DNA of 64,000 nucleotides, taken from the NCBI GenBank assembly GCA_047495785.1, contig JBLDXI010000046.1, positions 744,001-808,000 on the forward strand, written 5' to 3'. Under the pieces are notes generated by a model. The model did no database searches. It was not told the origin of the DNA and saw only the letters and a program-made list of their open reading frames with translations. This DNA is from Lepidodermella squamata. Taxonomy: Eukaryota > Animalia > Gastrotricha. A program made the translations under genes and the position numbers. Shown here piece after piece: positions 1,064 to 37,289 of the stretch; the stretch's first letter is position 1, and each line of letters begins with the position of its first letter.

Positions 1064-2077
1064 GCTGATTCAGGACAAGGCTCTTCATCATCGAATTCAG
1101 CCGGAGGTTCGGACAAACCGGTTCGTTTTTTCTATTTTGACTTTTTTTTAAATTGTGTCACATTTCGAGACAAGTGCATGAAGTGGCCATGATATCTGGG
1201 GTCTATTGGTGGAAACATCAGAATGACGGAGATATCGTAGATAGAAGAGACAATGTTTGCTCATTTTGAGAAATATTTGAAATTTAAAAAAAAATTCGCC
1301 TAGAAAAAATAATTTGTAAACGTCATTGACGCAAACAATCGGAAGTTCTTTACGGCTATGCCCCTTCTAGAAAAGTTTGAATTTTCCAAGAATTATAGAA
1401 AGATTGTACGAATTGTAAATAATTCGCACGATGTTCCGGGATTGATCAATGATTATTTATCAATTCTAAGAAATCCAGACAGGCAAGAGTAAGCCTTGAG
1501 CTCGCTTTTCCCGTCGCTGCAAGTATCCGAAGGTTTCCGAAGATACACTATTTACTTTGCGGCGGTCATGTACCAGCGAGAGATCTTCTTGAAAAATTCG
1601 AAAGTTCGCTCTTTGCTAATGCCCTTATCTCTTTTTCAGGTAGGCGACTTCGATGAAGAATACGTGCACTACAGACTGCACCTTGAGGAATCTCCATCTC
1701 GTTTCTATCCACACACTTGTCTCATTTTGCCAATGATCCTCTTCCTGGCTCAACAAAAAAAGCTGAAGGATTTCTACTACAAAGAGATCCAGATGCTTGT
1801 CATAAAGATCGACAAATGTGTCAGGAAGAAGCACGGACAAAAGGAAGGCAAGGAGTACCCTGATTCGGCTTGCCTGCCCAAAGACATCAAGAAGTATTTC
1901 CCATCTCTGGCGGTTAGGGAAGCAAGAGGAACAGGTAAAATGGGTCCCGATACTTCGCGCCTGGCGAACATCGCTACTGATGAAATGATGGCTCAATATT
2001 TCAGCCAAACCAAAGACTACTGCCCAAAGTGCACCCCGAAATATTCGCCTAAAATCAAGCGAAAGAAGCACAGTTAA
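1064..2077 (+). CDS. Paralog P1 (5' partial): linker exon plus H..H..CxxC C-terminal domain
   Basis: Exon 1064-1120 (ADSGQGSSSSNSAGGSDKP, phase 0) and terminal exon 1640-2077 (VGDFDEEY...YPH...KKH...SQTKDYCPKC...KRKKHS*). Both are homologous to P2 and P4 exons. AATAAA near 2404. Confidence 0.8.
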
Positions 2078-2562
2078 TTTGCGCCGTTCGAAATATGCGC
2101 AAATCGAAAATCGCTAGCCTAGCTAGTTATTTTCAAATTTATGACATTTTTTAGTAACACGGCATTTGATTGGTTATGTTTTTTCACTACGAAGCCCGTG
2201 AAAGTTCGATACTTATTTCTTCAACTCGGTTCTAAATTTCAACTCGAACTTTATTTTGTTGTTCGATTGTATTAATTCGCCTTTTTTCTAGTTTTAACCA
2301 CCTCGTCTGAAAGACTTGTTCCAACTATTTTTGCGCAAATTGTTATCCGGTTGTGAAATTGTGAAACCAAAGGTGCCTAATTGACGATATTTTTCTTGCC
2401 TTCAATAAAAAAGACTATCCCTTTTTCATATTGTATTTTTTTTATTTTTAGAATTTTACATTGTGCGATGAATCGTTTACCCCAGTAAGCCACTGGCGAT
2501 TTGAGATCTCTTGATTGTAGCCGTAAAATTCTTGTGACTTGGTTTGAAATTATCCTGTTTAG

Positions 2563-2720
2563 GCATAGCTTAAAACATGATCGGCAACGGCCATTCGTAC
2601 ATGGTTACTTGTGAGGCGGGCGAAGACGTTAAAATAGCGGGCCTTTCAGGAAAAAAGTTGGTGAGCAAAATCAATTATTTCATCAATCGCCGTTTGATGC
2701 ATTGTGAACTAAATCAGATA
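2563..2720 (+). pseudogene. Orphan first beta-module exon (MIGNGHSYMVTCEAGEDVKIAGLSGKKL) cut off by retroelement DNA
   Basis: Near-identical to 10775-10932 and homologous to P4 exon 18890-18982 plus its intron. Homology stops near 2720. Confidence 0.65.
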
Positions 2721-2757
2721 AAGTCGGATGCCATAGCTGGCCGAACCTTCTCCACAG

Positions 2758-3300
2758 GTCATGGAGCTGCGTAAACATCATCCACCTGATCCCGTCATGC
2801 TGATCTTTGGTGACCGCACGCATCACGAAATCAATCGCGACGCAAAACGAGATCATGTGACAGGATGCAGCCATGCCTAACACCGGAATCGACTGAGAAA
2901 CTCTCGCTCTCCACTCCAGCCTCCATCAGTACTCTTCATTCAAAGCCAGTGTAAAACATGGCAATGAGTCGAGCAATTTTGTCCGGAATGCCGCAGTGAC
3001 GGAGGATTCTCCACAAGGTCTCGCGGTGAACGCTATCGAACGCCTTCTTGAAGACGACGAAGTTGATGAGCGCCGGCGAGTTCCATTGAAGGCATTGCTC
3101 CACGACGTTCCGCAGGGAAAAGATTTGGTCTATACACCCACGAAGCGAGCGAAAGCCAGCCTGTTCTTCGCGCAACGGCTTATCCACCTCGTCCCGTATG
3201 CGGCACAAGATGACCCGACAAAACACCTTGCTGGGAATAGAAAGAAGGGTGATACCACGCCAGTTGTCGCAGCTGGTCAGGTCCCCTTTTTTTAGGGCAG
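2758..3300 (-). mobile_element. RTE-clade non-LTR reverse transcriptase fragment
   Basis: KKGDLTSCDNWRGITLLSIPSKVF...EEQAGFR...KAFDSVHRETLW...GIPDK, then FCVAIDFVMR...GIRW..FTQLHDL. Contains a stop and frameshift and is truncated just before the (F/Y)ADD motif. Confidence 0.85.
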
Positions 3301-5790
3301 CTAGGCGGCCTGATCGGTACGACGATGTCCATGCTGAACAGCGCGAAGGCGCGTTGGCTTGCCGGATTGGGGCCAGTGGTACCGTGGTCGGCTGGTTGGT
3401 CGCCTTGCGATCCGCGCAGGTGCGGCAGTAGCGTCGGACGGCGCTGAAGCAGCTGGGGAAGCAGACGTAGGCTCTCACGCGCTCGAGCGTCTTGAGGCGG
3501 CCGAGGTGACCCACGGCGGGCGAGATGAGGCACAACCGAGGGAACAAGCGGTCCGATACCGACATGTAGAATACGCCGGCTTCGTCCCTCGAGACCGTGT
3601 CCTGTAGCTGTAACAGACGGGCCGAACCGGCCGAGAGCGGCTGAGGTAGAGGTTCGCCGAGGTCTAAGTGTCGCAGCACGGGGCCGATATTGGGCGGCGC
3701 GAAGGGCGGCGTGGTCGAGACGAAACGAGTCGGCAACCGACAGCGAGGCGGCACAGGTCGCGTCGGCTGCAGAGCTGTCGTTAGAGATGTAGCTGATATC
3801 GTCGGGCTCAGCGGATGGCTGCGAGAGGCCGTCGGCGAGCTTGAGGCAACCGGGACGGTGGACCAGTTCGAAAGGTAGTCGCCAGACACGATTGCTGGGA
3901 TCGCGGAGGGTCTGAAGCCACAGGAGCGCCTTGTGATTGGTTTCGAGGACGAACCTGGTGCCAAGTGCCAATCAGCTATTCGCGGAAACGTTCACACGAG
4001 AACACGATCGCAAGACACTCTTTCTCGAGGGCTTGGTACTTCCGCTCGGCGACTGCGCGAGCCTGTCGAGACCGTCGTCACCAGCATTTCAGCAAGCAGC
4101 TGCGGCCAACGGGCGAAATGGGCGTGCAACAAGACGCTGACTCGAAAATCGCGGAAACGCTCGAGGACGAGGCGCAAGTGGCGTAACAGCTCTGGGACAC
4201 TTCGATCAGGTCGCGTTCGCGAAGGAAACGCAGGTGCTTTCGAGGCTCGGCCTTCTTATGGGGCCCCTTGTAGCGGCGAGGCACACTGATCGGATGCGTA
4301 GCCGTTTTCTCGCTAAGGAGCGGCTGTTTCATCGAGCGATCGCTGGACACGGGTGACCAGTAATGCACGCATGGCTGCGGCATCGCCGTCGCCGAGGCCA
4401 GAAACTGAGCGCGAAATAGGATCCTTAGGAAACGCATCGGACGCGGACGGCGGGGCGAACGAGAGCGAGCCGGTGGCGAGGTTGAACTCAGCACGGTTCG
4501 CGAACAGCAGAGAGCCGTCGAGGACTAGGCGGTGCTCTTCGCCACTCACGACCAACACGGACAGGTCGGCCGCATGGGGCATGGGTCGCGGTGTGCAGGC
4601 GGTGCATTCGCACCCAACATCGACATGCAGGCGGGCGTAGCGATCGAGGTGGGCGAGCTGGTGCTGGCGCGAGCCGCTGTCATGCGACCGTTGACCAAGA
4701 CCTGGGCGTCGTAGAATGGCCGGCCATCGACGGAAACCGAGGCCCAGCGACGCCCGGCCGGCGGCGAAAGGCGGATCGGCAAGTTCCAGTCGAGGCCACG
4801 GAGGCGGAGCTGTCGCAGGTCGACCATACCGAGAACCGCGCGTGAGTCGGCAATCTGACCATCGGCGGTTCCCGTAGTGACAGGTGTGGGCAACGGGGTT
4901 CCTGGCAGTGCAGAGACGATAGTTGCATTAGCACCTGTATCGACAAGACCGGTAACGGGGGTCAGCGAGGTGGAAATCGCACAGGGCATCAACAGCGGCG
5001 GAAAGGTTGGCTAAGGCGGCGTCGGGAGGGCAAGAACGGGCGGTCACCTGGCCCGTCTGTCCTGTCAGTTTGACTGGTTGCTGTGAACTGGCGCCTGGGC
5101 GGCGCCTCGGAGCTGCGCCGACATCGACGGGCACCCCAGGTCGCGGAAGGCGAGGTCAGCAGCACCACACCACAAACAGATACCCAGCTAGTGGTAGAAC
5201 GCCAACTGGTCGATAGCCTCCAGCCATGGATCGCGGCGAGGTGGCCGGCGCGAATCATTCGCACGACATGGTGGCCGGTTGAGCGGCTGCTGCTGCCGCT
5301 GCTCGAAAGGCGGCCTGAGATTACAACGGCTTCGACGCAGGCTCGGAAGTCGCATAACGCTGGCGATGGCGATTGCAGCGGTCTTCTGCTTGGCCGCCTT
5401 GTCCTCCGGGGCGACGCTCGTTCGAAATTCGAAGCGTGGGCAAGGAGCACAGCCGACGGATCCGATTCGCCATGTAAGGTTCAGGCTTCTCGTCGCGCAG
5501 TGTAACGTGGCACTAAGCTCGCCAGGGCGTAGGCCAGCCAAGAAAAGGCGCGCGGCCAACTTGGCCTGGGTAGTGTTGCCGCGCGTGGCGTCGGCATGGC
5601 CGCCGAAGATCACAACGGCTTCGCCGGGCTGCTGTTTCGGTTCTTTGTCGACAGCCGTGCTCGGCACGCGGGGGGCCAAATCGTGCCGGCGGCCAGCAAT
5701 GCTACTGCTACCTTGCACGTGTCGTTAAACAAGCCGTGCAGCAGGTTCGCGAGGGCCGATATGTCGACCGTGGCTTTGATGGCGTTGATC
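3301..5790 (-). mobile_element. Degenerate Ty3/Gypsy LTR retrotransposon internal region (gag-PR-partial RT-RH-IN N-terminus)
   Basis: Protease LVDTGANAT (about 4950), RT N-terminus LRERDLIEVSQSCYA (about 4200), RNase H ...RFVLETNHKALLWL (about 3950), integrase zinc finger GHLGRLKTLERVR...YCRTC (about 3450). PR-RT-RH-IN order; many frameshifts; GC-rich; no LTRs found. Confidence 0.85.
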
Positions 5791-6740
5791 TAGCATCTCA
5801 ATCTTAAGCTCAAGAAGACCACCAGAAATGGTGAATGGGCTCTAGCCATCTTCAGCGTTTGGCTCGCTCGTATTACAGTCAGTACTCGCCATATTACACT
5901 CCGGTATAGGTATAGTACACTTTTCGCTTAGGTACACCTTTTTCTTGTCCCCCCGTGAAAGTGAACTAAAGCGAGTTCTGACTGTACATTCTCTAAAACA
6001 ATTTAGACGGTTACAATTAATATTTTTATTAATTGGGGCCTCGTCACACAATGGAGCCGAGCAATTTACCTGGACAATCGATTTATCCGAATGCAATGGT
6101 AAGCAACTTTCAATATTTGACATGCTATACCACGATGATTCATCTAATGGCTGGTCCTATCTAATTTATCATCTAATTTACTTCGACTGCCGGCGTATCA
6201 AGTAAGACCGCTGAATGTGCTTAGGTTAGACTGTCTGTTTTGTGATCTTCCAATCAAGGTATGCATGTACTTACGTAGTTCCTGCGGCAACTTTCTCAAT
6301 TTCTATCGAAAAATCTAATTGTTATCTACGCTTCTGACACAATTGAAATGACACAATTTTCGAGCTTCCCTCGACTAGTTTTATGTATCGCTTTCACCCG
6401 ACTAAATTGTCTGTATTTTGTTGAAGGACGTGGAATGGAAAGAGCAAGGCGGGCGGTTGATTTGCCGCGCTCATATCGCTGGCGAAATGGTTTGTGAAAT
6501 ATTATTTCTAGCCTTATAAAAGATTAGTTGAATTGCAATGGGTAAGGTTATATCTTCGGGCTCCTTTGATCATGTCGGAACCCATTCCAGTAAGCTCACA
6601 AATTCGCATGAGCCAATTCCTCTCCGTTAACGAGCCATCGTTGCTCAAAGTTAGAAAAGGCGAAAATTGTAAATCACTCGAGGGTGCTCTAACTTTTAAT
6701 TACCTACTACGAACTACAAATTAATCTGCTCCCGTTTATT

Positions 6741-6890
6741 GGGCAGACCGTCATAACAGCAAGTAGCCAAAACAGAAAAGCGACAAAACAGCGAATTTTT
6801 CACTTGCGACATAACAGCAGAAACATGATGCATCTTTCACATAGCAAGTTATCGCTGTTTTGTCGCGAAATATAATAGTTGCTGTTTTAG
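6741..6890 (+). repeat. Dispersed repeat family (AACAGC-rich MITE), partial copy
   Basis: gggcagaccgtcataacagc...tgcgacataacagcagaaac..gatgcatc is shared with 44575-44750 and, inverted, with 60289-60480. Confidence 0.7.
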
Positions 6891-7723
6891 AAAATCCACC
6901 ATTTTCCATATTTTTTGCCTACCGTAAAAGAAATTGTTTGAGACGTCTAAAAAATCGAAACATCTTTAAGCGGAACCAACTTTGAATTTTGCGGAGCCAA
7001 ACTCGAAATATGCCCAAAGTCACCTTTTGAATAATTCAACGAATTTTAGCCTGGTTTCTGAATTGAGGAAAAGTTTACTCTGAATTCACTGGTGATTTAT
7101 TATAATTATTGTGGTCAATCTTAACCCGCAAAAAATATCCGAAAAGTGATTTCAGGCCACTAGAAAATCCCAAAATCTGGTTCGGCTCACCGTTAAAGGA
7201 GGACCCCTAGAAAATAAGGAAACAAATCGAAAAAAATGAAGTATTTGGAGTTATCGATTTCGGATGGCTTCGAACATTTCTCTAACTTATGAATTTCATC
7301 TTGTTTTTATGAAATTAATTGTCCAAATGTAACCAGCGTCGCTGCAAGAGGCATTGTTACTTACGGGATCGCTTATCATTCTGTTTTACTTTCAGATTTA
7401 CTTGCGACGGTGTGAGTTGCTCAAGACTGAACAGTGTGAGTTGCACAAGGCTCGACTGGTTTCTTTAAATGCAGAGCTAAAGGTGATTTCAGTAAATAGC
7501 TCATGAAAGACTAATTTATTATCTTTATAGACCGTCGAAATACAAGAGTGGGAGAAGGGTCCTACGGACGTCTATCACTACAAGGAAACATCTGATACTC
7601 GGCAGGAGGTGAGTGCAAAGATTGTTTCTTTGCTTAGGTCCGAGCTACATTGTGCTCGACTCGAGGCGGAATTACGATCGAAACCAATTGTAACAATTGT
7701 ATAACAATTTAACATTTTATAAA

Positions 7724-8143
7724 CGAAGTGCACTTTTTTTAACTTTCATACAAAATTAACTTTCATACATATTTTTTTTCATAAAATCGTGTTTTTCAGC
7801 CAAACTGTGATTAGGAATTGGGGTTAGGGGTTAGGGGTAGGTGCCAGGGTTCGGGTTCGGGTTAGGTTTAGGGTTTGGTTAGGGTTCAGGATTAAGGTTA
7901 GGGTTAGGAAATTTCGAGTTTCGGGTTTCTACGAAGCTCGATTTTTGGGCCCTTGCGCTTCCCGAATAACCATTTTTCATGTGGAAAAAATTGACTACGC
8001 TTTCGGAACCCCGTTTTTCTTTTTCATAAACCGAAAACTAGTCATCTGGCATTTCCCTAATGTTTTCAGCTTGAATTTAATGAAAAAAAATATGTATGAA
8101 AGTTGAAAATTTCATACATATTTATGTATGAAAGTTGGCACCC
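7724..8143. mobile_element. MITE with 9-bp TSD (TTTTATAAA)
   Basis: TTTTATAAA at 7715-7723 and 8144-8152; inverted aactttcatacat/atgtatgaaagtt sub-repeats. Shorter relative at 25361-25512. Confidence 0.7.
7811..7908 (+). repeat. Degenerate telomere-like (GGGTTA)n tract inside the MITE
   Basis: ggggttaggggttaggggtagg...gggttcgggttcgggttaggtttagggtttggttagggttcagg...ggttagggttagg. Confidence 0.8.
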
Positions 8144-10239
8144 TTTTATAAATTGCTTAAATTGTTTAAAAATCGCTGTAAAATGCTTGTTACTTCCATG
8201 ATAGCAGCGTGATATTCCCGATCTGATGGACCAATTTATGCAATTTATGGCCAACGAACGTATTAGGATGGATCTCGAAACCTCGTCTACTTCTGGTGAC
8301 TGCCCTCTGTTGGCACCGCCACCCGTCGAGTGGAACCCTGATCAATCCGGACCGTCTAGCAAGTCTTCAACACCGCAGCACGGTATTGAATTTACCAAAA
8401 GCCCCACGAGCAATCAGGACTCTCATGAGTATCAATCGATGGCCGAGCCGATGTCTCACCCGCCTTCAACATCGCAATCAGGTCCGGAATCCCCCGAAAC
8501 CTCAATGAACAATTGCGAATCACGGTCTCAATTGAGGATCGACCAATCTGGACCGTCAACTAGCAAGCCTACAACATCGCAACCCGATGATGAATTCACT
8601 AAAAGCCTCACGAGCGATAGCTACTCTTTAGCAGAACTATTGACGCTCGAGACGCGATTATTTCTGCTCCCAACATTGCAACCTGTGATACATTCGTCGA
8701 GAGTCCCATGGGCTATTGCGACTCACATTTGCATGGGCCGCGCGAGCCGGTATCTCTTACGTCGCAACCTGGTCAGGCTTGCACCAGAAGCTTAGCGAGC
8801 AATTGCGAATCACTTTCCCAATTGAGGTCCGGGTCGAAATCTCACCCGCCTTCAACAACACGACAAGGCGGCAAACGGCCTAAGAAGGTTAAATTTCCTG
8901 TTCAACTTACTCATTTTAGTAATATTTGTTATATTTAGGCTGTACCAGGAAACGGCTCGGCATCATGGGATTCAACTTCACGGTACACGGTTCGTTCTTT
9001 GGATTTCGAAAATATATAGTGCATGGGCGTAAACCAGGTAGTCGTCGATCTGAGAGTGACATTTTTATTTTTTTCAGGAGAATCCAAGTTCGAAAAGTGC
9101 TGATTTTCAATAGGAAATATCGGTACTAATTTATGGCAATTTTGCGAAAATTTCCTCCTCGTGAAAATGTGTGCGATTTTTTAGAGAAAATATAGGCCGA
9201 AGAAGGGTTTTTTAGTTTTCAGTTTGGTAGTTGTGTGAACAACCAAAACCACCAGCAGCTGGTTACGCCACTGCTATTCAGAATATATTTGGCCTTCAAG
9301 TGGTGGGCTTTGGCGAATTTTCCGTATTTTGCACCAAATTGAAAAAGACGATTTTTGAAATCTAAGACGTTTTCTTCGGGATTTTAGACCTCTAAGATGC
9401 TCCCATCCTCCTTAACCTCAAAGGAATTGTCGATTGTGGTTTGTGTGGAGACGCCGGCTTGATTCCATGAAACATGTCGAATATCCAGCGATCGAGGACG
9501 ACCCAAGAAAGACTGGTCAAACTCGATTGAAGTAATAGTAGAAAACGTGGACTGGCGCGCCACAGAATTAACGGCAAAAAACGGTGTCAGAATTGGAAAA
9601 TTATGAATTTTATGGTATAAAAGCAAATTGCTAATTTTTTGCCTTTCCTTCGCCTTCCACAAAACTTGTGAGGGTATAGATACGCATAACTCGTGTGGAA
9701 GGAAAATAAAATCATTCATATTAATATTTTGTTTGAGAAAAAGATGACTCGGAAATTCTAGAATAATAAGATCCTCTTGACAAACTCGGAAATGTGTTCT
9801 GTTTAGTTAATCTCCATGTCTCGTTTTACAGGTTGCCATGTTCATGGAGGACAATAACATCTACCGTGAAAAATATAAACCTACGGATAAATCCATGATC
9901 CACCAGTCGCGCATGCTCCCAATTATTCTATTCCGTCTGGCTCTAGAAGGCCTGAAGGATTTCAGCAATTTGCAGATTAAGGCGCTTGACAAAAAAATTC
10001 AAAATTTCGCGGATGAGAAGCACGGAATAGGAGCTCGCAAATCGTTCGAGGAGTCTACATGGATTGCGACTATAATTAAAAGATATTTCAAATTGATGCC
10101 ATTTTACGAAACGAAAGGACCAGGTAATGTAATCGAAGACCTCCTAGCGAAGCACCCCGCCACTGCTGGTCTGCTTGCTGAATGTTTTGAGGAAACGAAG
10201 AATTTGTGCTCCATCTGCACCCCACCGCCTCCCGTCACC

Positions 10240-10935
10240 GACTCGCCTAAAAACAAGCGAAAGAAGCACCGTTAATTTGCGCCGTTCAGCTAAAACTAGC
10301 GCAAATCTCGAAAATCGCTAGCCTAACTAGTTATTTTCAAATTGATAAGCAGAAAGGAAGATTTTTTATTAACACGGCATTTGTTTAGTTACGTTCTTAA
10401 CGACCATTTTTTGTGCAATTTCGTTAATTACTTTTTGTTCGGTTTCAACTCAGTTCTAAATTTTGACTCGAATGAGGCTCTGTTTTATTGAATTATTTGA
10501 ATTATTGAATGATTATTGAATTATTTTTTCTAGTCTGAAAGAGTTGTGCCACTATTTTTTGCGCAAATAGTCCTGTTATCCGGTTGTGAAATTGAGAACC
10601 CAAAGGTGCCTAATTGACAATATTTTTCTTGCGTTAAATAAAAAAGACGCACTTTTTCATATTGTATTTTATTTTTATTTTTTGAATTTTAACTCTGCAA
10701 GCCACTGGCGATTTGAGAGCTCTTGATTGTAGCCGAAAAATGCTCGTGACTCGGTTTGAAATTATCCTGTTTAGGCATAGCTTAAAACATGATCGGCAAT
10801 GCGTACATGCGTACATGGTTACGTGTGAGGCGGGCGAAGACGTTAAAATACCGGGCCTTTCAGGAAACAATTTGGTGAGCAAAATCAATTATTTCATCAA
10901 TCGCCGTTTGATGCATTGTGAGCTAAATCAGATCT
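10240..10935 (+). repeat. Direct duplication of about 2040-2720 (gene end, 3'UTR and downstream orphan exon)
   Basis: Colinear identity from tcgcctaaaa..aagcgaaagaagcac..gttaatttgcgccgttc through ...gatgcattgtga.ctaaatcagat. Confidence 0.85.
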
Positions 10936-13869: not shown

Positions 13870-15363
13870 ATGTCAATCCTCTCCAAACTCATCTTTCGTC
13901 CACTGTGGAAGGCGATTGCGAATTGTGGAGAAAAACGTCGTGCCGATGTTTGTCTAAATCAGCAATTAATCAATTTATTAATCAATAATTTCAGAAAACG
14001 TTGTTGTTGGTGTTGACCGGTTTCGTGGACAATCAGCGGATCGCAGATGCGTATATCGAAGCAGAAAATCCAAAACAAGTTAGTCTATTGTCGATTGCAT
14101 TTAATAAGTCTTTCAGTCTGATAACCTAATTATACTATCTAGATTCGTATTACCGGCTATGGCATTTATAAGCTGGTTTGCTTTGACAGAGATCGAGAGG
14201 TAATTTCAGGAAATTTTGATGGAAGACTGGCTTCATCAATTATAATTTAAATATTTATTTTTAGACTCTTGCAATTCCTTTCAAGGTGAATGGCGTGCTT
14301 TCAAGTATGTTTCTTAGTAACAGCTCAAAGTTATTCCCAGATATACGCGTAGTAAAAGGTTGCCATGGGGAAGCTATCTATCGGAAATCTTTTTATTTGT
14401 CCTTCACTTTCCTTGCGCAATTTTTCAATCAATTTAGAGGCAACAAACATCTATCTAACAATCAAAAGCAAAATCGATAATCAGTAATAATAGAAAAAGG
14501 ATTGTTTGTTTATCTTCGGTTTGTTTTATTTTCGCTCTTCTCCTTTAGATGTTTTCAGCTACAAAGAAGTCCCTGGTCCTCATCAGCCGGTGAGTTCAAA
14601 GTGTCTTTTCATAATCGGATTGCATTGCTGAGGTGATGCTCGCAACGTTTATGACCGATTAAGGCTCAACTTTGATTCAAGCGGATTATTGTTTCAGGTC
14701 AGCTATCACAATGCCGAAGAATCGAACGACTCTTCCTCATCGGTAAAAAAATGACATAAAATAGTGACTTTTTTACACGTTTGATTTGCAGACTTCGCTT
14801 CTTGATGTGGAACCAGAGGAAGAAATGGCTTTTGATAGCAAGTTGGATACCGAAACCTTGCCAACTCTGGTTTGTATTGCTGTGTTGCGTGTATGAGATA
14901 TCGTTTTATTACATACTTATCATATAGAGCGATCTATCCGACTCGGGGACGAACTCTGGTGGGTCTTACTTGCCTGAACTGTCTAGCTGTTCAAAATCTC
15001 AATCCGGTCAGCATGGAACGGTAGGCTTTCCCCATCGCACATGCATTATTTGCGGGTCAAAGATATCGGCCCGAGTATGGCTCAACTGCAATTCAAACTA
15101 AACAATTTTTTTTATAGGTTACCGAACTGGCCACCGAAGAATTTAAAAAGGACTGTGCAATTCAGACCACCGAAGTAGTTCGAGTCGACTGTGCAACTCA
15201 GGTCATCGAACAATTTCGAGTCGAACTGACGATGCAGGCGATTCAAGGCGCCGCATTGGCGTCACATGATGACATGTTCCCCATCAATGCCGAGCAAGCT
15301 GCGAATGGCGATCAACCACTTGCTAACATTTTGCTCGATGCGTTCCAAGATGAGGATGACTAG
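13870..15363 (+). CDS. Paralog P3: beta module, linker and acidic tail with TQT-like repeats
   Basis: Exons 13870-13947 (tentative start), 13995-14078, 14143-14199 (IRITGYGIYKLVCFDRDRE), 14265-14304, 14549-14589 (NVFSYKE), 14698-14742, 14792-14869, 14928-15020, 15118-15363. All GT-AG, frame open throughout. Confidence 0.75.
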
Positions 15364-18889: not shown

Positions 18890-21800
18890 GCTAAAGTTAT
18901 GATCGGCAACGGGCATGCGTTTGTGGTTACCTGCGTGAAAGGTCAAGAAGTTTATCTTGCGGGCCTTTCAGGAAATAATTTGGTAAGTAAAATTAATCCC
19001 ATCAATTGTAATTAAATGCCCTGTGCGTCATAACAGATCTTGACAATACCAATAGATGAGCGTCGCCGTCTCAAGGTTTGTTTTAACAGTAGTTACTTCC
19101 TTAGCTTATTCAATCCTCGGGTATTCGGATTTTTCTATCAAACAGCTGCAGGTGAAGCTGTCATAAGTAAGGCTTAGGTAATACGCTGGGAATTTTGCAT
19201 CGTGTCGATGTCTTGTTATATCTGGCCTGTTCGCGTTCACTGTACTTCCTATTTACGTACAACTGATTTATTAGGATATGCTTGTTGATTGTGTTGCTAT
19301 CTGCTTAATTACTTTTTTCTAGCCGATATCGGTCATGGTCGAAGATGAGAGAAAGCAACTGCTCACAAGTAAGATTTTCGTAAAATTTCAAGAGCTTGTT
19401 TTTTACATTTCTAAAATTCAAGTACCACTTCAATTCCTGTTTGACAATGATGTTAATAAAGTAAGTAATTCCAAATCTGCTTGGATGTAGAACTCAAAGC
19501 TGATGTCTTTATTTCAGACTCGGCAAGGCATCAAGACTCACGAGCAACAGCAATTTGGAACTGCTCAGCCTCGAAACGATTCTCAGACCTCTGATGATTC
19601 TTGCCTGGTAGGGGCTGTCTTAATCAAATCGTATAGGGTTTGATTTTATCTTTTATTTTAGAATGGCATTCATGGACCGGTATGTTATGAGCTCCAGCTC
19701 CATATTTTAGACTTTCAACCCTTGCCTATGGTAGCTGGACGAAGAAATCGAGACGCTATCGAAACAAACTGGAGCGGTTTATGCTGTGGAAAGCCCGGTT
19801 GCACCCGGTAACTCGTCCTCGGTTAGTTTTCGTGCGATTTTTTTTGACAAATTTTGAGCACTAGTTTTAAACTTGCAGACTGACAATTCTCATGTGCTGC
19901 CGAATTCTCAGGGAATTGAATCGGTAATTTCAATTTTGTTCGTTGAATTTTATCCTAAATTTTTTAATTTTGCAGACAGAAAAGCACTGTGACCTCTTCG
20001 ATGATTTCGAGGTAGCTTGAATCTGGTTTCCTGGAGGCTGGTTTTATTTTCACAATTCTTATAGGAACCTGAAGATGGTGTAAAGCCAGTCGATCAGTCG
20101 AGCCCGGCCGATCCGTCAACCAGCTTTGAGGTACATTAAGCTTGACGTTTTAGCTAATCTTCAGATATTGAGGAATGAGAGAGCGAGCAAAAAATATTTA
20201 AGTTCATAAACCTACCGAAAATAGCGAATTATTAGGCATTGTCTCGTATATTTTTGGAATGATGCTCCAAGGAAATTTGACTTTTGGCCATGCCAATTGA
20301 CGAGATTAAAATAGCAAAATTAAAGGTTTGCAGGCGTTGAATTAAATTAAGCAGGCTGAATAAATATGAGCGCTGCTTCATAACTGTGAGATATCTGATT
20401 TTCCTAGAATTTGTGAGAATTTTTCTATTTTGCCACAAAGCGTTCTTGAGCTAACCTTGCAAAACTTGAGGGTAAGTTTGGCATTGAGATCTTTAAGATT
20501 CGCTATTGAAATTTGGGCCGAATTTTGAAGTAACAAATAACCTCTGTTAGTTCAATGACCCTCGATTCTTTGCGTTTTTTTTTCTAAAAAAAATGTATAA
20601 TTTTAATATTTTGGTAAACCAAAAACGTGATATTCAAAATCTTCGAAAATTCGCCGGAAATAAAAGCTAAATATATGGGGTAAATTTAATTCATCAGTAT
20701 AAGAATTTGAAAATTCTACGACCGATAACGAAAACAAATTTGTAAAAAATTGAATTGGCCATTTTCACTCTGGATTCAGCGATGGCATTGCTGTCCAATT
20801 AAAAAAAATGAAAAAGTTTCAATTAATTTCAGCTCGCCTTAAGTTTTGTATTCGTGGCGTCATAGTCAGGTAAACTTTGTATATATATCGCGTTTAAGAT
20901 TTTCGTGGAATATACCTAATAAATGATTTAGATCTTGAATCATAGTTAACTCATAGTTGGCTCGGTTAGATTTTCCAATTTTAACAAGTGGGTCGCGGCA
21001 ACCTCACAACTCTGCCTTGCGTGATGACACTTATTCTTTCCTAATTTTTCTATAGCCTCCATCAATGCAAGTTGGCGATGAGTCATTCAGCTATTCAGAG
21101 GCTGCTGATTCAGCATTTGAGACGACACTGTCAAATTCAACTGACCGAAACGAGTACATGGTTCGTTTGTTTGGCCTTGTAAAAATGTGAAAATATTAAG
21201 ACCCAATCGATATTATTTGCCTAATTACTTCAGAGCTAAGGTTAGGGTTGGGGTTGAAGCTCCAGCGGTAGATAATCCGGCTTTTTACTCGATTCGTTCT
21301 CCAAAACCAAGGACCTATCAGAACCCGCGTGTCCCATAAATTGCGCAACTCTATTTTTGGATTTTGTCCATTATATTTAAATAATATCTGAAATTAAAAT
21401 ACTGGGACAATCTTAATTAAAAGAAATTGAAAATTTACCGGAAAAAACCCGGAAACCCCCGATGCTAACTGGTTCGGTAAAATTTCGGTATTTTTCCCGG
21501 TTTAGCTGAATTTCTCCGGATTTTTAAGTGACATACCTGATTACTATTCTCATGAAATTTTCAATTTTTCCGGATTTCTGTGTTTTGGCCTAGTTTCAGA
21601 CACTACCAAATACGTCAAGCATAACACTGCCGATTAAGGTGAAGAACATCAGGTCAACCGTAACAAGGGCCAAATTCAGGAAAAAATCGTTATTCACGTG
21701 GTCAGCACTCAGCTTTAAAGTTTACCCTTAATATTCGGGTCGTTTTTTTAGGAAAATAGAAAATCGATGGCGTATCGTGCTTTCCGCTCGGGATTTGTTT

Positions 21801-22923
21801 GCCACCTCAATCTCAAAACATTGTTTGTAAATATAAATTTTTTAACCTCTGATAGAATGATTTAGTTTTATCCGACCAATGTTTTATTTCATCCGACAAC
21901 CAAACATGTGATTAAAATCATCCGAAATGAAAATATCAATTTTCTCAATTTTCCCCGAGTTCGATTTTTCCTCAGGGTTATGCACCCTATTTTGGCCCCT
22001 GAACCGGCAGAATTTTATGGTGAAAATTTATAGTGATTTATATTTTTTACGGTAATTTTTTGAAAATATGAAAAAGCAAGTCGGCAGGTTTTAGTCACAT
22101 TTAATCAAAGTAAGACATTGGTCGGATGAAAAAAAAATTCTCCGATTTAACTTGAATTTTTTAAATAATTTGACCGTGTCTCAGATGAATTTTTTTTCTT
22201 GTCCTACAGCCTTCATCATCCCAGGATGGCGATCGAGCTGAGTCGGTTAGCTTTCCTATGCAAATTTGGTTCATTTTTAGTAATCTTCTTCATTTTAGGC
22301 TGAATCGGGAATTGACGTTTCATCTCAGAATTCAGCTGAAATTGAGTACACGGTTCGTTTTTCTAATTTAAAAATGAAAAATTCAAAAATAATGAGATGA
22401 AAATTTCTCATTAATTATTCCCCGTCTCTTTTTACAGGAAGACGATTTCGAGAAGGACTTTGGGCGATATTGTGAGGAATCGAAGCCCCGCAAATATCAT
22501 CACACGTCTCCTATTCTGGCTAAAGTCCTCTTCCAAGCTCAAAGCAACGGCGAAAAGGATTTTTACAATCCTGAGATCCAGGCGCTGGCTGAGACAATAC
22601 AAAATGTTGTGTATGAAAAGCACAAACCAAAGATTGAACGATTTGTGAATAATCATAAAAATGACGGATCGGTTAAAGAGGAAGTGAAGTTTGTTGAGAA
22701 ATTTTTGAAAAAATTTGAATCACGCCCGAAATCTAAAGCCCTCTCTGACGAGATGAAAAACTACTTCCCGTCTCTGCCGTTCCAGAAAAACGAAGGGATA
22801 GGGAAGCTGCGCGGTAATACGAAGCGCTTAGCTGAGTTAGCTACCAATTCTTTGCTGAATGAACTGTATGATGAAACGAATGATCTGTGCAAGATTTGCA
22901 AAATTTGCAAAACCAGTGATTGA
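18890..22923 (+). CDS. Paralog P4: divergent beta module, micro-exon linker, H..H..CxxC domain
   Basis: Exons 18890-18982, 19037-19075, 19323-19368, 19423-19460, 19518-19607, 19662-19679, 19735-19821, 19879-19923, 19976-20011, 20065-20130, 21056-21160, 22210-22245, 22299-22352, 22438-22923 (...YHH...EKH...DETNDLCKICKIC). Frame open. Start exon and possible extra exons near 21600-21830 uncertain. Confidence 0.75.
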
Positions 22924-25267: not shown

Positions 25268-26588
25268 ATGTTGCCAAGCTCGTCCCGCGCTGTTCCCTGG
25301 CCATCGATTGCAACAAATTTGATGGTAAGTAAAACTTTTGACTGTTGAAATTTTTCTATAGGGTGCCAACTTTCATACATATTTATGTTTGACAAAATCA
25401 CCTTTTATACCTATTTTGTTCATTCAACTCGAGCTGGAAACTTTATGAAAAATGAATATTTATGAAAGGTAAAAATGTCATAAACAAATAATATGTATGA
25501 AAGAGCACTTCGTTTATTTTTGTTATTTTTCAGCTTTTTACTTGGCCTAAATTTTTGTTATTGCTTTCAGGCAACAATCTTGACGTTGTACTTGGATGGG
25601 CGCCCAGTCGCCAACGCTCGTGTCGTAGGCAACACGGTTGGTCCACCTAAATTTTTTATGTCTAGTCTCTCTTAGCTAAAGAGGTCACTGTAGAGTAGTT
25701 TTTCCTTAAATAAACTAGCTTTTGTTTTCATAAGCTGAAACTCAATTTGTTGTACGCTTTCACCTGTAAAAATCGTTCAAATCTAATTGATTGCTTACGG
25801 GACTGCGACACAAGTCTGATATTTTTACATCACGCTCTAGATTTACATCGAAGGCTGGGGCGAGTATCCCATGGTTGCTCTGGATCCTGAACGGAAGGTA
25901 ATTTCGGAAGATACCCCACGATGGACTAATTCCATTGTTGAAAGAATTTCAGGTTCTAGTGATACGACAATGCACTGGCAGTTCAACATTATGTAAGGAT
26001 ATATGAATTTGTAATAAAATTTAATTCTGATTGATCGTGCGCCTTTAGATGTCTATGGCTTCGAAGAACCGGGTCCTCCTACTCAGGTGAGTGCCACTCG
26101 TTCGAAGCAAGTTTTGAGGTCCAAAGGTCCAAGGTGTAATACACTCGACCCGATTAAGGCGTAACTGTAATTCAAACTAATAAAAAGCATGTTTTTTAGC
26201 CACGCCAGAATCCCGGTGAAAATTCAGTCGCATTCCACAATGAAACCACCGATTTGGTAAAAAAAAATGAATTGCCTAAATATTACGTCTTAATGCAGGT
26301 TTTTTTGCAGGTTAACATTCCGAAGGTTTGTCTTATCAGCAATTAGTCTCAAAAGTGATATGAAAATGTCGATAACAGCTGGACAAGAATGTTCACCGGA
26401 TGACAAATGCATCTCAGACGATTGTTAGTGACGAAAGCGGGCTTGTAGTTGACGCCATTCGCTCAAACAGCGAGCCTTCCACATCTCGAGCCGATCAGCC
26501 TAGATCGGTGAGCTTATAGACATATTTCTGCAATTCTGGAGCCTGTAATATTCTTTATTTTTAGGTTAAACTTGCGAAAATCTCCAAG
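25268..26588 (+). CDS. Paralog P5 (3' end unresolved; may splice into P6)
   Basis: Exons 25268-25324 (MLPSSSRAVPWPSIATNLM, homologous to P8/P9 exon 1), 25571-25636, 25841-25897 (IYIEGWGEYPMVALDPERK), 25953-25992, 26049-26086, 26200-26256, 26311-26325, 26379-26507, 26565-26588. Confidence 0.7.
25361..25512. mobile_element. Short inverted copy of the 7724-8143 MITE family
   Basis: gggtgccaactttcatacatatttatg ... atgtatgaaagagcacttcg match the two ends of 7724-8143. Confidence 0.6.
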
Positions 26589-27737: not shown

Positions 27738-29855
27738 GTCGTCGATTTGTACGACCGAAATGGGAAGTCATTCTCCCGCGCTCGCCTCGAAGGCAACAAA
27801 GTTTGTCAAATGCCCAACTTTTATAAGCATAGCCCTATGAGTAGGATTAACGATAACCTTGAATTACCTACTGAATGACTATCGAGAATCTTCAGAACTG
27901 CGAAAATTCTGCTATGAATGTAATTATTGAGCAGAGATGTGTATATTTAGATGGATTATTATTCCAAGTGATTGTTTATCAGACTGCGTTATTTATTTGA
28001 CTTCAGGTTTATTTGGAGAGCTACGGCTGGAGCGAGTTTCAACTGCTTTCTTTGAATGCTGAGGAAAAGGTGATTTCAAGAAATACCTCATATGAAAGAC
28101 CCATTTTATCTTTGAAAACATTTTCAGACAGTGGAAATAACACCATCGGACTTGACTACCATCTATGACTATAAGGAAGTATCTGTTACTCATCAGCAGG
28201 TGAGTGCTACTCGCTGAAAGCCTGTTTCTTTAATTGGATGCAAGATACAGACCTGATTAAGGCTAATGAATGCTGTTTAAATGATAAACACATGTTTCAT
28301 GTTTGCAGAGTGATATTCCCGTGTTGCTGCAGCCGATCATTAATAATTACGAGAACGACATTGAATCGGTTGTTATGGTGTATTGTACTGTTTTGTGTTG
28401 ACATTTCTTTTACTGTTATCTAGAATGAATCACTTAGCGACATCTTGTCGGACTCGGGCGAGTCCGACGTGCCTGGACCGTCAACAAGCAAGCGTCCAGC
28501 ATCTCAAAGCAGTCAGCCAGAGGTGGGCTTTGAAACGATTCTTCATCATTGCATTAAATATTATAAAATGTCGAGTTTTTCCGAACTTCGAGGGCCGATT
28601 TTTCTCTGACCATTAGTTATTTCCCATTTTATTTATGAGCCACGCTATTTGAAATGGATAATCTGATAAACTCCGATTTTAACGATTTCCAAATTTTAAA
28701 TTATAAAATGACCGGTAACAGGTGAAAAGTACGGATTGGCGTAATTTCTCTATTTTCCACAAAATCGCAAAACATTTGTTGACTTCAACTGGGTTTTTCT
28801 TGAGGATTTCGAATTTCCAAAATTCAGATATCTAGAAGGCTCCCATCCACCTTAAACGACGGGAGTGTCGTCGAAAAGGCTTATCGATATAGGTCGATAT
28901 AGTGTAAGCACTAGCTCGATTTCATCGAAAATTTCGAACATCCAGCGCGATTCTGCACTCCAGATCACCTTAAAAAAATCTAGACTGCGCAATAAAAAAT
29001 GACATCGGAATTTAGGAATTGAATTTTTAATTGATGCAATAAAATTGAATTTTTTGGGGGAGAATTAAAAAAAAATCCGCATTTTCCACGGTTACAATTT
29101 GAAGCCCATTTTCTCAGCAACCCTGATGGCTGTCGACCTCTTTTGATATCGTTCGACTCCTCGGTTATTGATCTTGAAAGCTACATCAAAACCTCGCAAT
29201 GTCAAACCCCACTTTTCAATTGTTAACGGTAAAATTGTTTTCGATAGTAGGACCTAGTTGAAAATTCTCACGTCTCGAGAAGTAAAGTTTTTCTTGTTAT
29301 TTTCAGCTTGTGCAGCTCTCGCACGAGAAATGCGAAGAAGGACGCTGCGACTTGCAGGTATTTTCGGCCAAGTTTGCTTACTTGTACGATATTGATGTTA
29401 ATTTTGAACAGAAAAAATGTTTGAGTAAATATGATGGTGAGCTGAAAGTTTTTTTGGCCGACTACAACCCTAAAGTGTACAACAAACACGTGACTCTTAC
29501 CGTCATCACCATCATACGTATGGCTGTTCAGCAATTCATGGGCAATTTTACGAACCAGACTATCAAAAACCTTGCTCTGGAAGTTTACAACATGCATCCG
29601 GAACATATGATTCACGTCGACGTAAGTGGCCGGTTTGCCCGGAAGCCGAAGTTAGACAAGTCGAATCAGTTTGCGACTAACTTGAAGAAAAAATTCCTGG
29701 CCGCTCGTTATACAGAGTGTCCGAAGAATAAGCCTGGGCCGGGAAAGTCTATAATCCCGTTCGCATCGGAACCAATCAGGGAGACAGCGTTTTCCGAGAC
29801 GAAAGACGGGTGCCAAATCTGCAAACTCCGTCGTGGTGTGGCAAAACAGCACTGA
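27738..29855 (+). CDS. Paralog P6: beta module, linker, extra H/C motif and H..H..CxxC domain
   Basis: Exons 27738-27800 (VVDLYDRNGKSFSRARLEGNK), 28007-28069, 28128-28199, 28309-28368, 28424-28522, 29307-29357, 29412-29855 (...NKH...PEHMIH...SETKDGCQIC). All phase 0. Confidence 0.8.
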
Positions 29856-32698: not shown

Positions 32699-34104
32699 TA
32701 TAATATTCATTTGACGCCGTTGGAATGTGTACCTAGTGTAGCTCGCGAGTGATGTTGGAGCGTCACGCCCTAAATTCGGCCATATTTGTTATTTGTTATT
32801 TTTATAGAAGTAAGCACTCGATTAAACCTGGTATACGTGAAATAAGCGGTCTGATGGGTAAGATCTCAGAAAAGCACGGTTCCTAAACTCGATTTTGAGC
32901 TTAAATTGTGACGGCTAATCGGGACGAAAAAGCCGTGGATAAGTTGTGGTGGTTCTTGCTGTTTTCTCTTGTAAAACCTTCTTCTCAATCTACTCTCCTA
33001 TTTGAATACAAAAACCTGTGGTGCAACCACGGGTTTTTTTCGAGAAAAGTGCGAGAAAAGATGCAAAATCCTCACTTATTCTTCGATTCGGACTTGATTC
33101 GGAAGTGTAGGGAAAGGACTGAAAAGCCGTGGATCAACACCGCATTTACTGGCGATTTCTTACTTCCTAAGTAAGATCTTGTTGTGCTCTACTAGAAAAC
33201 GTGAAAAAACTGTGGTAGAACTCATTCTGTTCCTTGCAGCAAAGCCCCAAATGACTCCAGGTCGTGCATTTTCGAGGTGTTGTGTCTGCCGTAGTGAGTG
33301 CTATTCAGGACGAAAAAGTCGTGGATAAGTTGGGGTGGATCTTGCTGTTTTCCCTGTTAAAACCTTCCTCCGAACACCTTCTGCTATTTGACTACAAAAA
33401 GCTATGGTGCACCCATGGGTTTTTTCGAGGTAAGAGCGACTAAAAACACCAAATTTTCACTTTGTCCTCGATTTGCAAGCTGAGAGGGAAAAGACTGAAA
33501 AGCCGTGGATAACCACCATATTAACTGGCTATTTCTTACTTCCTTGGTAAGCTCTTAATGTGCCCTACTCGAAAATGTGAAAAAACTGTGGTCGAACCTG
33601 TTTTGTTTCTTGAATCAGGGCCTTCAAAGACGCTAGGGGATGCATATTTCCTAGGTTTTTGCACTTTCAGGTCGCCTAGCGGTGAAAAATCCATGGTTGC
33701 CTATGCATTTCTATTCATTTTATGATACTTTCAACTATTCTCTATCATTTTAGCTGAAAAGTGCGCGGTAAAATCCGCAAAAAGTATGCAGTGAGCACCC
33801 CCGAATCGCGCGGTAACCCGCAACTTGAAATCAATTTTCCCTCAAATCGCATGCGGCAAAACTTTGCAATAAAATAAAAAATAAATTGGAGAATTGATAA
33901 TAAAAATAAGAATTTATCACAAAAATTATATTATTTTAGTTAAATAATTTATTTTTAACAGTTTTTCACAGCAGGAATTTTTATGGGAGGGCGGAGGGAC
34001 CGGACTTTTTTTGCTAAGTGTATAATATTCATTTGACGCCGTTGGAATGTGTACCTAGTGTAGCACGCGAGTGATGTTGGAGCGTCACGCCCTAAATTCG
34101 GCCA
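32699..34104. repeat. 84-bp direct repeats bracketing a 1.24-kb segment that contains a tandem duplication of about 386 bp
   Basis: 32699-32782 vs 34021-34104 (one mismatch); internal units start ggacgaaaaag.cgtggataagttg at about 32922 and 33308. Confidence 0.85.
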
Positions 34105-34638
34105 CTTTTTGGGTTTTTTCCTTCTTTACCAGCCAGGTGAATTTTCACAAAATATTCGGCGAATACAGAATTATGGTTGAGTTCTCAGCCTATCGAATGC
34201 CGGTTTCTGCAAATCCGGACGATTCTACTTTGATTTATCGCTAATTTTATAGTCACCTAGACTCTTGCCAAGAACTAGGTCCTAACTGGGTGTCCTAATT
34301 TCGGCCACCTCATCCAGTTCCGCTATAATGTTTAGTATTATATTTTGAAAACGTAATTCAAAGGAACAGCATTATAACGATATAATTGATTTCCTGAGGA
34401 TTGGAGCCAAGGTCGCAACAAATCAATGGTAAGTAACATTTGAATATTATTTTTTTTGCGAAATTCGCGAAAACCTAAAATTAATGTTTCAAAAATTTCA
34501 AAAAATGGCCGAAAATTACGAATTTTAGTTTCTACTTTGAAATGACCACTCGAAATAAAATCTGCCAAAGTCAGCTGCGTATTTTTTTTACCTTGAGAAG
34601 CTTCACCCGGCTGCATTGTCTGTCATTATTATTTCTAG

Positions 34639-37289
34639 GAAAAATTCTTGGATTTGTACTATGAAGATGGGCGCATGGCCTACTGTGGTGCTCGTGTCGT
34701 AGGTAACAAGGTTAGTCAACTAACTTTTACATGTCTATAGCCTCATTACAGCGTGTCCCATAGGTAAGTTGCGCAACTTTTTTGTACAAAATTCAACTAA
34801 TATTTTATTTTATCAAATTAAATTTACCGAGAGAATATTCCATCTTTTATCCGCGATTTAACCGAAGATATAAAAAATTTACCCGGAAAAAACCCGATGG
34901 TAACTGGTTCGGTAATTTTTGGTATTTTTCCCGTTGGACAATAATTTCCCAGACTTTTTTAATCCAATTGATCCAAAGTGACATATTTGATTACTTTTCT
35001 CGTGATTTTTTGAATTTTTCTGAAATTTTTCGGGCCTCCTATTTTCTTTGCTTGCGTTTATTATGGGACACACTGTATTAATCAAGTCGGATTAACGAAA
35101 TTTATTAAAAAATGTCCCAAGTTTTAAGAGAAGCTTAAAGTTTTAAGAGAGTAAAATGTCCCTTATAATCAAAATCGGAAAGCTAACAGGATCCGCAATT
35201 TATTAATAAAAAAATCGAAAATAAAAGATGCGGAAACCGGTCGAAATCAGTTTGTCCGAACTTGGGTCTAATCGATTTGCCATGGCAAGATGGGCCGGTG
35301 CGGCGAGATTCGAGTCCGTTGGCTGGCGCGGATCAGCTCAGGCAGTTTTGGTGATCCATCAGACGGTTTGAAAATACATATCAGAAATTTTTTCATCGGT
35401 ATATAATACGTTCACATGTAACTGATCGCCTATCAGAGACTGCTTCATAATCTTGCCATTGTACGATCTAGCTTCGTAACGGCTGGGGCGAGTTTGACTT
35501 GGTTTGTTTGGATCCAGAGCGGAAGGTGATTTCACGAGATATTTCATAAAAAAAAAGGACTAATTCCATCTTAACAACATTTTTAGACTCTGGTAATACG
35601 ATCGCTCGATCGCCGATTCCCGCAATTACGTGAGTAATTTTAGCGTCATTTTTACTGGTCTTATCCACGTTTTTAGACATCTACAACTTTGAGGAACCGG
35701 CTGCTCTTGTGAGTGCGATTAATTAATTAGAAATTAATTACAAATACTTGGTTTTTTTTAGCGCAGCATTGTTCAGGCTGAGCCAAACGGTGGAAGCTCG
35801 TCTTTGGTGATGAAAAATTGCTGAAAAATTGCTGTTAAACACATATTTATTGCACGTTTACAGAGTGTTATTTTCGATCTGTTGGAGCAATCTTTCGGTG
35901 CTCTTTCGGATACCGAAACCCCGTTGGTATGCAGTACGGTGATTGAGCCATCCGGCGAGGAGACGAATCCTGGCCAGCCCGGACCGTCAGCTAGCAAGCA
36001 GCCTTCAACATCTCAATCCGATCAGCCTGGATCGGTGGGTTTCTGAACAATTTTGATCATAAAATTTCACGTGGCGATTTTTTTTTGAGAAAATGTCAGC
36101 CAAATTTTTAGGTTTCAAAAATTGAAAAAAAATTGAAATAATATTTTTTTCCGACGGGTGTAATACCGATTGATTTTTCTATTTAAATTTTAAATCGCGC
36201 TGGTGAAATCGCGAATGAAGGATGGGAGGTGATCCTGGTAGGTTTTGTTATCAGAAAATATATACCGTAAATTCAGAAATACAAGCCCAGGCTCCTCTTT
36301 GTCGGACTTAGTAATGCCGCCTGGGCTTATATTTGAATATTTACGGTATAGCATTTTTGCGAAAATTAAAAAAAACGGTACGGAAATTTTAGGAAATTTA
36401 TATACAGTTTGACTTGATAAATTTGTTAGCTATTTTTTAAAATTTAAACCTGCCAAGGGAAGTCAGAGAAAAATCCGCTGATCATTGTTTTTTTACCAAT
36501 TGAAATCGGATTTCTTCGGATTTTTTATTCCTGTTATGAAATTTCATTGCTAATGTTATCATTTTTATACCATTCGATGTGTTGCCTAACACATTTTCAA
36601 TTAATTTTCGAAATTTCAAAGGTTAATATTTTCGACGGTAGAATTTAATTTTCAATAAACTGTTGAAATCGCCTATTTTAGTGGGTAAATGGTCGCTAAA
36701 AGTGGTTCGAGAAATGCATTTTTTATCAGAATTTTTTCAATTTTTCAGAGCGCTGTTGTTCCTGTGGTACTCTCGCACATGGCTTGCAAAATAGGAAGTT
36801 GCGACTGGCAGGTTATTTTCGACTGAAATTTGCTTCATTTTAGTAAATCAGTGTTGAATATAGGAATTGTGTTTAGAAAAATACCCTGGTGATCTGGACA
36901 ATTTTATGGCCGTCTACAAGCCAAGGTCGTACAACAAACACGTGGCTCTCGCGATCATCGCCATCATGCACCAGGCCGTTCAGCAATTCCACGGCGATTT
37001 CCAAGGCACGGATATTAAAAACCTGACCCTGAAAATTTGCGAGATGTATCCGGAACATAAGATTCACGTCGCCGAAAGCGGCCAGGCCTGGGAGCCGCAA
37101 TTTGACAACTCGAATCAGCTGGTGAAGATATTGAAAAAATTTCTGCGGCTCGCTCGTTTCAAAATTTGCCCGAAGAATAAACCCGCGTCGCCAATGTCTC
37201 TGGTTGCGTTAGCCTCTGAAAAAGTCGTTGAAACGGCGTTTTCCGAGACGAAGAGCGACTGCAAAATATGCGTGCCGGGGACGATTTAA
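34639..37289 (+). CDS. Paralog P7, closest to P6 in its C-terminal domain
   Basis: Exons 34639-34710, 35472-35525 (LRNGWGEFDLVCLDPERK), 35587-35629, 35677-35708, 35762-35806, 35864-36034, 36749-36811, 36864-37289 (...NKH...PEHKIH...SETKSDCKIC). Start exon not found. Confidence 0.8.
34749..35075. mobile_element. Tc1/mariner-type MITE, CAGCGTGTCCCATA family
   Basis: TA|cagcgtgtcccata ... tatgggacacactg|TA. Relatives at about 21330, 45793, 53973 and 55240. Confidence 0.85.
36265..36346. mobile_element. 82-bp mariner-type mini-MITE (hairpin)
   Basis: TA|ccgtaaattcagaaatacaagcccagg ... cctgggcttatatttgaatatttacgg|TA. Confidence 0.7.

Follow-up and report, generated by a model that had tools for sequence, protein, structure and literature searches.

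In the gastrotrich Lepidodermella squamata, five genes of a tandem array encode proteins that end in a new, predicted helical domain, new in that no relative or fold match was found in the searches made. The array lies in a 64,000-nucleotide stretch of contig JBLDXI010000046.1 (positions 744,001 to 808,000 of the forward strand; hereafter the window), and its members are numbered P1 to P9 along it. In five members, P1, P2, P4, P6 and P7, the last exon codes for a homologous domain of about 125-130 residues, in which two His and two Cys are invariant. We give roughly an even chance to the overall interpretation that the array arose by tandem duplication and encodes a lineage-restricted family of nuclear-type proteins carrying this new domain and a putative zinc site.

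All five terminal exons lie on the forward strand, with a reading frame uninterrupted between a canonical AG acceptor and a stop codon. Searches with tblastn within the window connected P1 with P4 (E = 3e-22), P1 with P2 (3e-16), P6 with P7 (3e-42) and P2 with P6 and P7 (about 1e-3). A profile hidden Markov model (HMM) was made from A2, a MAFFT alignment of the five domains with 127 ungapped columns. Run against the six-frame translation of the window, it found five copies only (E about 1e-56 to 1e-58), with the next best match at E >1. Because of these tblastn values and the HMM result, the homology of the five exons is beyond chance. An initial annotation of this DNA had already taken the five exons for one domain, and the open exons, tblastn and the HMM agree on that point.

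Numbered by the P2 domain, 11 of the 127 ungapped columns of A2 are invariant: H24, F44, I49, L52, H64, S75, K83, A110, T122, C126 and C129. The first part of this pattern reads H-x19-F-x4-I-x2-L-x11-H, with x10 in P6 and P7. The initial annotation had placed F at +20, I at +25, L at +28 and the second His at +39/40 from the first His. A2 gives the same spacing, and the gap-free alignment claimed from the first His holds as far as L52. The endings SQTKDYCPKC, EETKNLCSIC, DETNDLCKIC, SETKDGCQIC and SETKSDCKIC are also as reported. The second His and first Cys are 61 residues apart in P2 and up to 86 in P4, where a third Cys follows the CxxC (CKICKIC). The charged insertion of about 25 residues noted past the second His of P4 is real, since the second His and the invariant Ser are 35 residues apart in P4 vs 10 in P2.

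The two His and two Cys had been singled out as being among the few invariant residues, and they indeed make up 4 of the 11 invariant columns. Four of the six His and Cys in ungapped P2 columns are invariant, compared with 11/127 columns overall (hypergeometric p = 4e-4 in a post-hoc test). H24, H64, C126 and C129 are kept in 5/5 copies, across subfamilies that are just 20-25% identical. Synonymous codons differ between copies at most invariant residues, and therefore conservation acts on the amino acid. Nei-Gojobori dN/dS values were 0.62 for P1-P2 and 0.63 for P6-P7, and every pair between subfamilies was saturated at synonymous sites. The domain drifts fast except at a few hydrophobic positions and the His/His/Cys/Cys set, and the invariant residues stand out because the background changes so quickly (dN/dS about 0.6).

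P2 is transcribed, and its transcript is spliced at four GT..AG introns. Two read sets, giving contigs X1 and X2, were mapped at P2, the one member checked with reads. X1 contigs skip 7483-7530, 7609-8207, 8888-8938 and 8990-9831, all with GT..AG ends. X2 contigs read through the 8888-8938 and 8990-9831 introns and hold none of the four joints. Since the splice joints occur in X1 only and X2 reads through introns, X1 is RNA-derived and X2 is DNA. The joined exons form one open frame of about 447 residues through into the domain, read through with an X at position 8684. In order, the protein consists of M plus IYLRRCELLK...LNAELK, then TVEIQEWEKGPTDVYHYKETSDTRQE, a 227-residue Ser/Thr/Pro-rich exon, a 17-residue exon and a 147-residue terminal exon ending KNKRKKHR. 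An in-frame stop lies upstream of the start codon at 6487-6489 and no ATG is found earlier, and the 3′ untranslated region (UTR) extends to about 10526.

Both runs also contain a second contig over 10146-10377, which covers the end of the P2 domain and the 3′UTR. It is about 8-10% different without gaps, and it is expressed. P1 transcripts were rejected as its source because P1 differs there by indels, so the divergent contigs are either a second allele or an unseen close paralogue. In two parts of P2 introns, 7127-7253 and 7635-8142, contig depth in the DNA run sums to 6,000-9,000, vs about 80 for exons, and many joints are rearranged, which points to a high-copy short repeat resembling a miniature inverted-repeat transposable element.

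P1 and P2 share a 721-bp block with 79% DNA identity (2045-2719 vs 10243-10933). It starts within the last 10 codons or so, in the SPKxKRKKH tail, and extends through the 3′UTR and past it, and its distal part recurs at 18899-19230. The domain-coding DNA just 5′ of the block is too diverged for blastn. The block resembles a tract of gene conversion, or else a shared repeat from which the basic tail and 3′ end came.

Structure prediction indicates, with moderate confidence, that the domain is helical and has five helices. The AlphaFold2 model of the P2 domain had a mean predicted local distance difference test score (pLDDT) of 79.7 and a predicted template modelling score (pTM) of 0.74, with helices at 2-14, 20-38, 46-64, 77-85 and 109-125. 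The P6 model keeps the helix order of P2 (pLDDT 60.4), and the P4 insertion maps to the predicted loop past helix 3. H24 occupies the fifth position of helix 2 and H64 the final one of helix 3, and C126 and C129 come directly past helix 5. All four thus sit at helix termini in the P2 model, as in other helical zinc domains, and the 10-residue blocks around H24, H64 and C126/C129 have pLDDT values of 86, 81 and 88. An antiparallel run of successive helices would place the beginning of helix 2 at one pole together with the ends of helices 3 and 5.

Zinc binding through H24, H64, C126 and C129 is the likeliest reading of this arrangement, and we put the chances of the putative site just short of even. 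A single structural Zn(II) bound by the four residues would fasten the tail past helix 5 to helix 2 at its start and to helix 3 at its end. Several observations weigh against the site or the wider interpretation. Only five sequences carry the domain, all of them paralogues of one genome with no orthologue, so that "invariant" refers to few independent lineages. The AlphaFold2 alignment had the same five rows, and the P6 model is poor. Helical wheels, in which alignment-averaged hydrophobicity gave the angle of each residue from the hydrophobic moment of its helix, put H24 at -129 degrees in helix 2, H64 at +76, C126 at +63 and C129 at +3, with only C129 clearly facing the core. The nuclear localization signal (NLS) and DNA-binding roles discussed below are read off composition alone. 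Expression evidence covers P2 alone among the members. Finally, X1 and X2 both have an extra G after 8684, so the long exon of the window copy of P2 carries a frameshift, and its reading frame would stop at 8795. The missing G reflects an error of assembly or else a null allele specific to a strain.

The positions of H24 and the CxxC lend themselves to another explanation, which we consider somewhat unlikely. The domain would be real and new, with the four residues not forming one intramolecular site. The CxxC would then act by itself, either in a zinc bridge between two molecules, of which it would form one half, or as a pair that is redox-active or forms a disulfide, and the His residues would be kept for helix capping or for ligand or partner contact. 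The Rad50 zinc hook, made of two CxxC motifs from two chains, is the model for such a bridge. Consistent with this, the CxxC comes right after helix 5, with a tail of low confidence behind it (pLDDT 66, then 51), H24 is not on the hydrophobic side of its helix, and the N-terminal module could provide self-association. Other ligand sets are also possible, such as C-x2-C-x2-C in P4 or a nearby H-x2-C-x4-C-x5-C in P6 and P7. However, all four His and Cys are invariant together in both very diverged subfamilies, and residues 121-130, the block with the CxxC, are modelled with confidence (pLDDT 88). A reducing nuclear location would argue against the disulfide option. Prenylation of the terminal Cys pair, of CaaX or Rab type, was rejected, as 5-18 residues follow the CxxC.

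The H-x2-C-x4-C-x5-C motif occurs in P6 and P7 only, where it is split between the mini exon and the first codons of the terminal exon (29307-29357 plus 29412-29420; 36749-36811 plus 36864-36872). It may form an extra small metal knuckle before helix 1. The motif fits the metal-binding theme, yet it leaves room for other ligand combinations.

The frameshift in P2 bears on a further alternative, that the members are decaying or non-functional duplicates in which conserved residues reflect shared ancestry and not function. The dN/dS of about 0.6 is high, the neighbours P3, P5, P8 and P9 are without the domain, and the surroundings are transposon-rich. Decay is nevertheless barely plausible, as all five terminal exons are open, the motif survives between subfamilies with saturated synonymous sites, P2 is spliced and transcribed, and intron positions and phases are kept. 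A transposon-borne open reading frame (ORF) was rejected as the source of the copies, which are 20-50% identical, multi-exonic and have common intron positions.

Searches for relatives were negative throughout. With the five terminal exons as queries and E values up to 10 allowed, Pfam hmmscan found no match for four copies and just four sub-threshold chance matches for P4 (E 0.05-0.09). Individual upstream exons had no Pfam match. A word-index protein search with P2 found no match, and an exact-sequence look-up of the P2 ORF found no record. The five-domain profile HMM had 0 matches at E up to 1e-3 among 1.84e9 representative proteins, and its best match among PDB sequences had an E value of 0.66. 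ESM Atlas feature searches with P2, P1 and P6 returned no usable match, and scans of metagenome contigs with P2 alone and with an alignment of P6 and P7 found no relatives. Foldseek, which the initial annotation had proposed as a check, found nothing below E = 2 in PDB or BFVD. An Atlas fold search reached a top template modelling score of 0.41, and neither the wide VIA-align comparison nor a VIA second look was convincing.

The weak fold matches were of two sorts, namely cyclin/TFIIB-type boxes and a mix of helix-turn-helix DNA-binding domains, and neither sort was prominent. The cyclin-box/TFIIB-core fold was the commonest theme among them, and it likewise has five helices of similar length. 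The domain might be a known helical fold in extremely diverged form, whether a five-helix box of cyclin/TFIIB type or a transposase-type helix-turn-helix, with the His and Cys as a lineage-specific embellishment. We regard this as distinctly unlikely.

Three known systems invite comparison with the putative zinc site. The N-terminal domain of integrase, a nucleic-acid-handling protein, is a three-helix bundle of about 50 residues with a His2Cys2 set, H-x3-7-H-x23-32-C-x2-C. The gastrotrich domain resembles this HHCC domain of retroviral and retrotransposon integrases in having a His2Cys2 set that ends in CxxC. Unlike it, the domain has about 130 residues, its His residues are 39-40 apart, and 61-86 residues separate the second His from the first Cys. 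None of the five copies matched Pfam Integrase_Zn at E up to 10, and the initial statement that the spacing does not fit integrase is borne out.

The second system is the lentiviral proteins Vpx and Vpr. The zinc ligands of Vpx are residues 39, 82, 87 and 89, and the single zinc of Vpx/Vpr is required for stability and partner binding (PMC11360348). The HHCC (HHCH) site of Vpx/Vpr is also built into a small helical bundle, with a His in an early helix and then a His and two Cys near the C-terminal end. Its principle, a bundle closed by a long-range HHCC site, is the one put forward in the initial annotation. There are three helices in these viral proteins and five predicted in the animal domain, and the spacing is H-x42-H-x4-C-x-C vs H-x39/40-H-x61-86-C-x2-C. 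The domain had no fold match in BFVD and no match in Pfam.

In the third system, the HHCC-type ZAS anti-sigma proteins, the motif is H-x23-26-H-x3-C-x2-C and the zinc is structural (PMC4960319). ZAS domains (ChrR, RsiW, RslA) are helical too, and their zinc is held by a distant His and an H/C/C cluster at helix ends. Unlike in ZAS, no His lies three residues ahead of the CxxC in A2; T, K, N or D is found there instead. ZAS proteins are bacterial and bind a sigma factor, whereas the domain described here is animal, and it had no Pfam or fold match.

By analogy, the domain, if it binds zinc, would work like Vpx/Vpr, ZAS and the integrase N-terminal domain. It belongs to none of them: it departs from the spacing that defines each, and it has no profile or fold match to any. 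Bundles of helices closed by a long-range HHCC site have precedents, so there is nothing new in the principle. The interpretation given in the initial annotation is partly supported.

The remaining parts of the proteins suggest a location and a type of function. Members would consist of a short conserved N-terminal module, a variable disordered linker that is Ser/Thr/Pro-rich or acidic, basic NLS-like clusters and the basic five-helix end. The consensus of the N-terminal module is GxGxYxLVxxDxExK, then ..DVYxYKE...Q, then xDIPxL. All five domains are basic (pI 8.3-9.7), and basic clusters flank the domain in P2 and P1 (KRPKK; KNKRKKHR/KIKRKKHS). On sequence grounds, this succession of interaction module, disordered linker, basic clusters and basic folded end points to a nuclear binding protein. 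The folded basic domain would be its binding end, for nucleic acid, chromatin or a partner protein.

Upstream exons were also placed in other members (Table 1). A small penultimate exon and its splice sites are common to P1, P2 and P4, and the earlier exons of P1 precede the start of the window. The upstream exons predicted for P6 are all in phase 0 with AG/GT sites, and their joined frame stays open. By analogy with P2, P6 would have six phase-0 exons with canonical sites, which give an open frame of 262 residues plus a start.

P3, P5, P8 and P9 may be truncated copies or members with other ends. The A2 HMM found no C-terminal domain downstream of P3 ahead of a transposon, downstream of P5 ahead of P6, or downstream of P8 or P9 within the window. 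The exons of P3 could be the 5′ exons of P4, split off by a transposon. P8 and P9 are alike further downstream, with ELAMEGFGES.. and GLASEEFGES...

Table 1. Exons of array members P1 to P9 and neighbouring retroelements in the window (LTR, long terminal repeat; RT, reverse transcriptase; APE, apurinic/apyrimidinic endonuclease-like domain).
Feature	Position	Strand	Content and basis
P1 penultimate small exon	1064-1120	+	ADSGQGSSSSNSAGGSDKP; homologous to P2 8939-8989 and P4 22299-22352; common ttttag/gttcgtt splice sites; 74% DNA identity to P2
P1 terminal exon	1640-2077	+	C-terminal domain; His codons 1712, 1832; Cys codons 2021, 2030; tail SPKIKRKKHS; ORF/frame, A2
LTR-element RT fragment	2936-3971	-	
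P2 5′ exon	6432-6489	+	Ends with ATG 6487-6489; loose RNA contig end maps exactly here
P2 coding exon 2	7396-7482	+	IYLRRCELLKTEQCELHKARLVSLNAELK; first part of N-terminal module; GT..AG joints in X1 contigs, translation
P2 coding exon 3	7531-7608	+	TVEIQEWEKGPTDVYHYKETSDTRQE; second part of N-terminal module; X1 joints 7482/7531, 7608/8208
P2 long exon	8208-8887	+	RDIPDL motif, then Ser/Thr/Pro-rich disordered region with internal repeat; end GGKRPKK; X1 joints
P2 small exon	8939-8989	+	AVPGNGSASWDSTSRYT; X1 joints 8887/8939, 8989/9832
P2 terminal exon	9832-10275	+	C-terminal domain; His codons 9901, 10021; Cys codons 10207, 10216; tail SPKNKRKKHR; RNA contig spliced onto 9832, A2, AlphaFold2 model
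P3	14155-14586	+	N-terminal-module exons only (14155-14208, 14530-14586); tblastn with N-terminal exons
P4 further candidate exon	22210-22245	+	
P4 penultimate small exon	22299-22352	+	AESGIDVSSQNSAEIEYT; predicted from splice sites and likeness to P1/P2 exons
P4 terminal exon	22438-22923	+	Domain with charged insertion of ~25 residues past second His; His codons 22501, 22621; Cys codons 22888, 22897
P5	25853-26522	+	N-terminal-module exon 25853-25906; Ser-rich exon ~26463-26522
P6 predicted upstream exons	28007-28069, 28128-28199, 28309-28368, 28424-28522	+	N-terminal module and short acidic/Ser-rich linker; homologous to P2 exons
P6 mini exon	29307-29357	+	LVQLSHEKCEEGRCDLQ; tblastx match to 36764-36814
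P6 terminal exon	29412-29855	+	Domain; His codons 29487, 29604; Cys codons 29811, 29820; tblastn, A2, AlphaFold2 model
P7 first N-terminal-module exon	35472-35525	+	LRNGWGEFDLVCLDPERK
P7 mini exon	36749-36811	+	SAVVPVVLSHMACKIGSCDWQ
P7 terminal exon	36864-37289	+	Domain; His codons 36939, 37056; Cys codons 37260, 37269; ORF, A2
Non-LTR retrotransposon, apparently intact	38669-43193	-	Complete; APE and RT
P8	49181-49408	+	N-terminal-module exons at 49181/49382: GYGTYDLVRFDQE; PLDVYSYKE
P9	55103-55774	+	N-terminal-module exons at 55103/55730: GTYDLVCFD; PSDVYSYKALGPVTQ

The window is animal DNA with a G+C content of about 40%, short introns of about 50 bp with TTTCAG-type acceptors, and several retrotransposons. 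ORF2 of the non-LTR element encodes 969 residues with the endonuclease and RT domains. Its ORF1, of 540 residues, is rich in Cys and His, shows several CxxC-type motifs on inspection by eye and matched nothing in Pfam. Downstream of the array are a multi-exon gene with a von Willebrand A domain and, by eye, a VIT-like start (57775-61349, forward strand), and a C-type lectin exon (62713-63108, reverse strand).

If the His2Cys2 site is not real, the array is one more orphan family of a poorly sampled animal group, a common kind. If it is real, the domain would join, as a new scaffold, the few helical bundles known to be closed by a zinc site of long range, next to Vpx/Vpr, ZAS and the integrase N-terminal domain. 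It would also provide a handle on an otherwise opaque nuclear protein family specific to an animal lineage. There is an outside chance that the domain represents a new helical fold, stabilised by zinc, for reading DNA or chromatin, and that its carriers are lineage-specific regulators in the nucleus, fast-evolving and tandemly amplified, which might for example control transposons or the germline. In that case, the family would be a functional analogue, on an unrelated scaffold, of other rapidly diversifying DNA-binding families.

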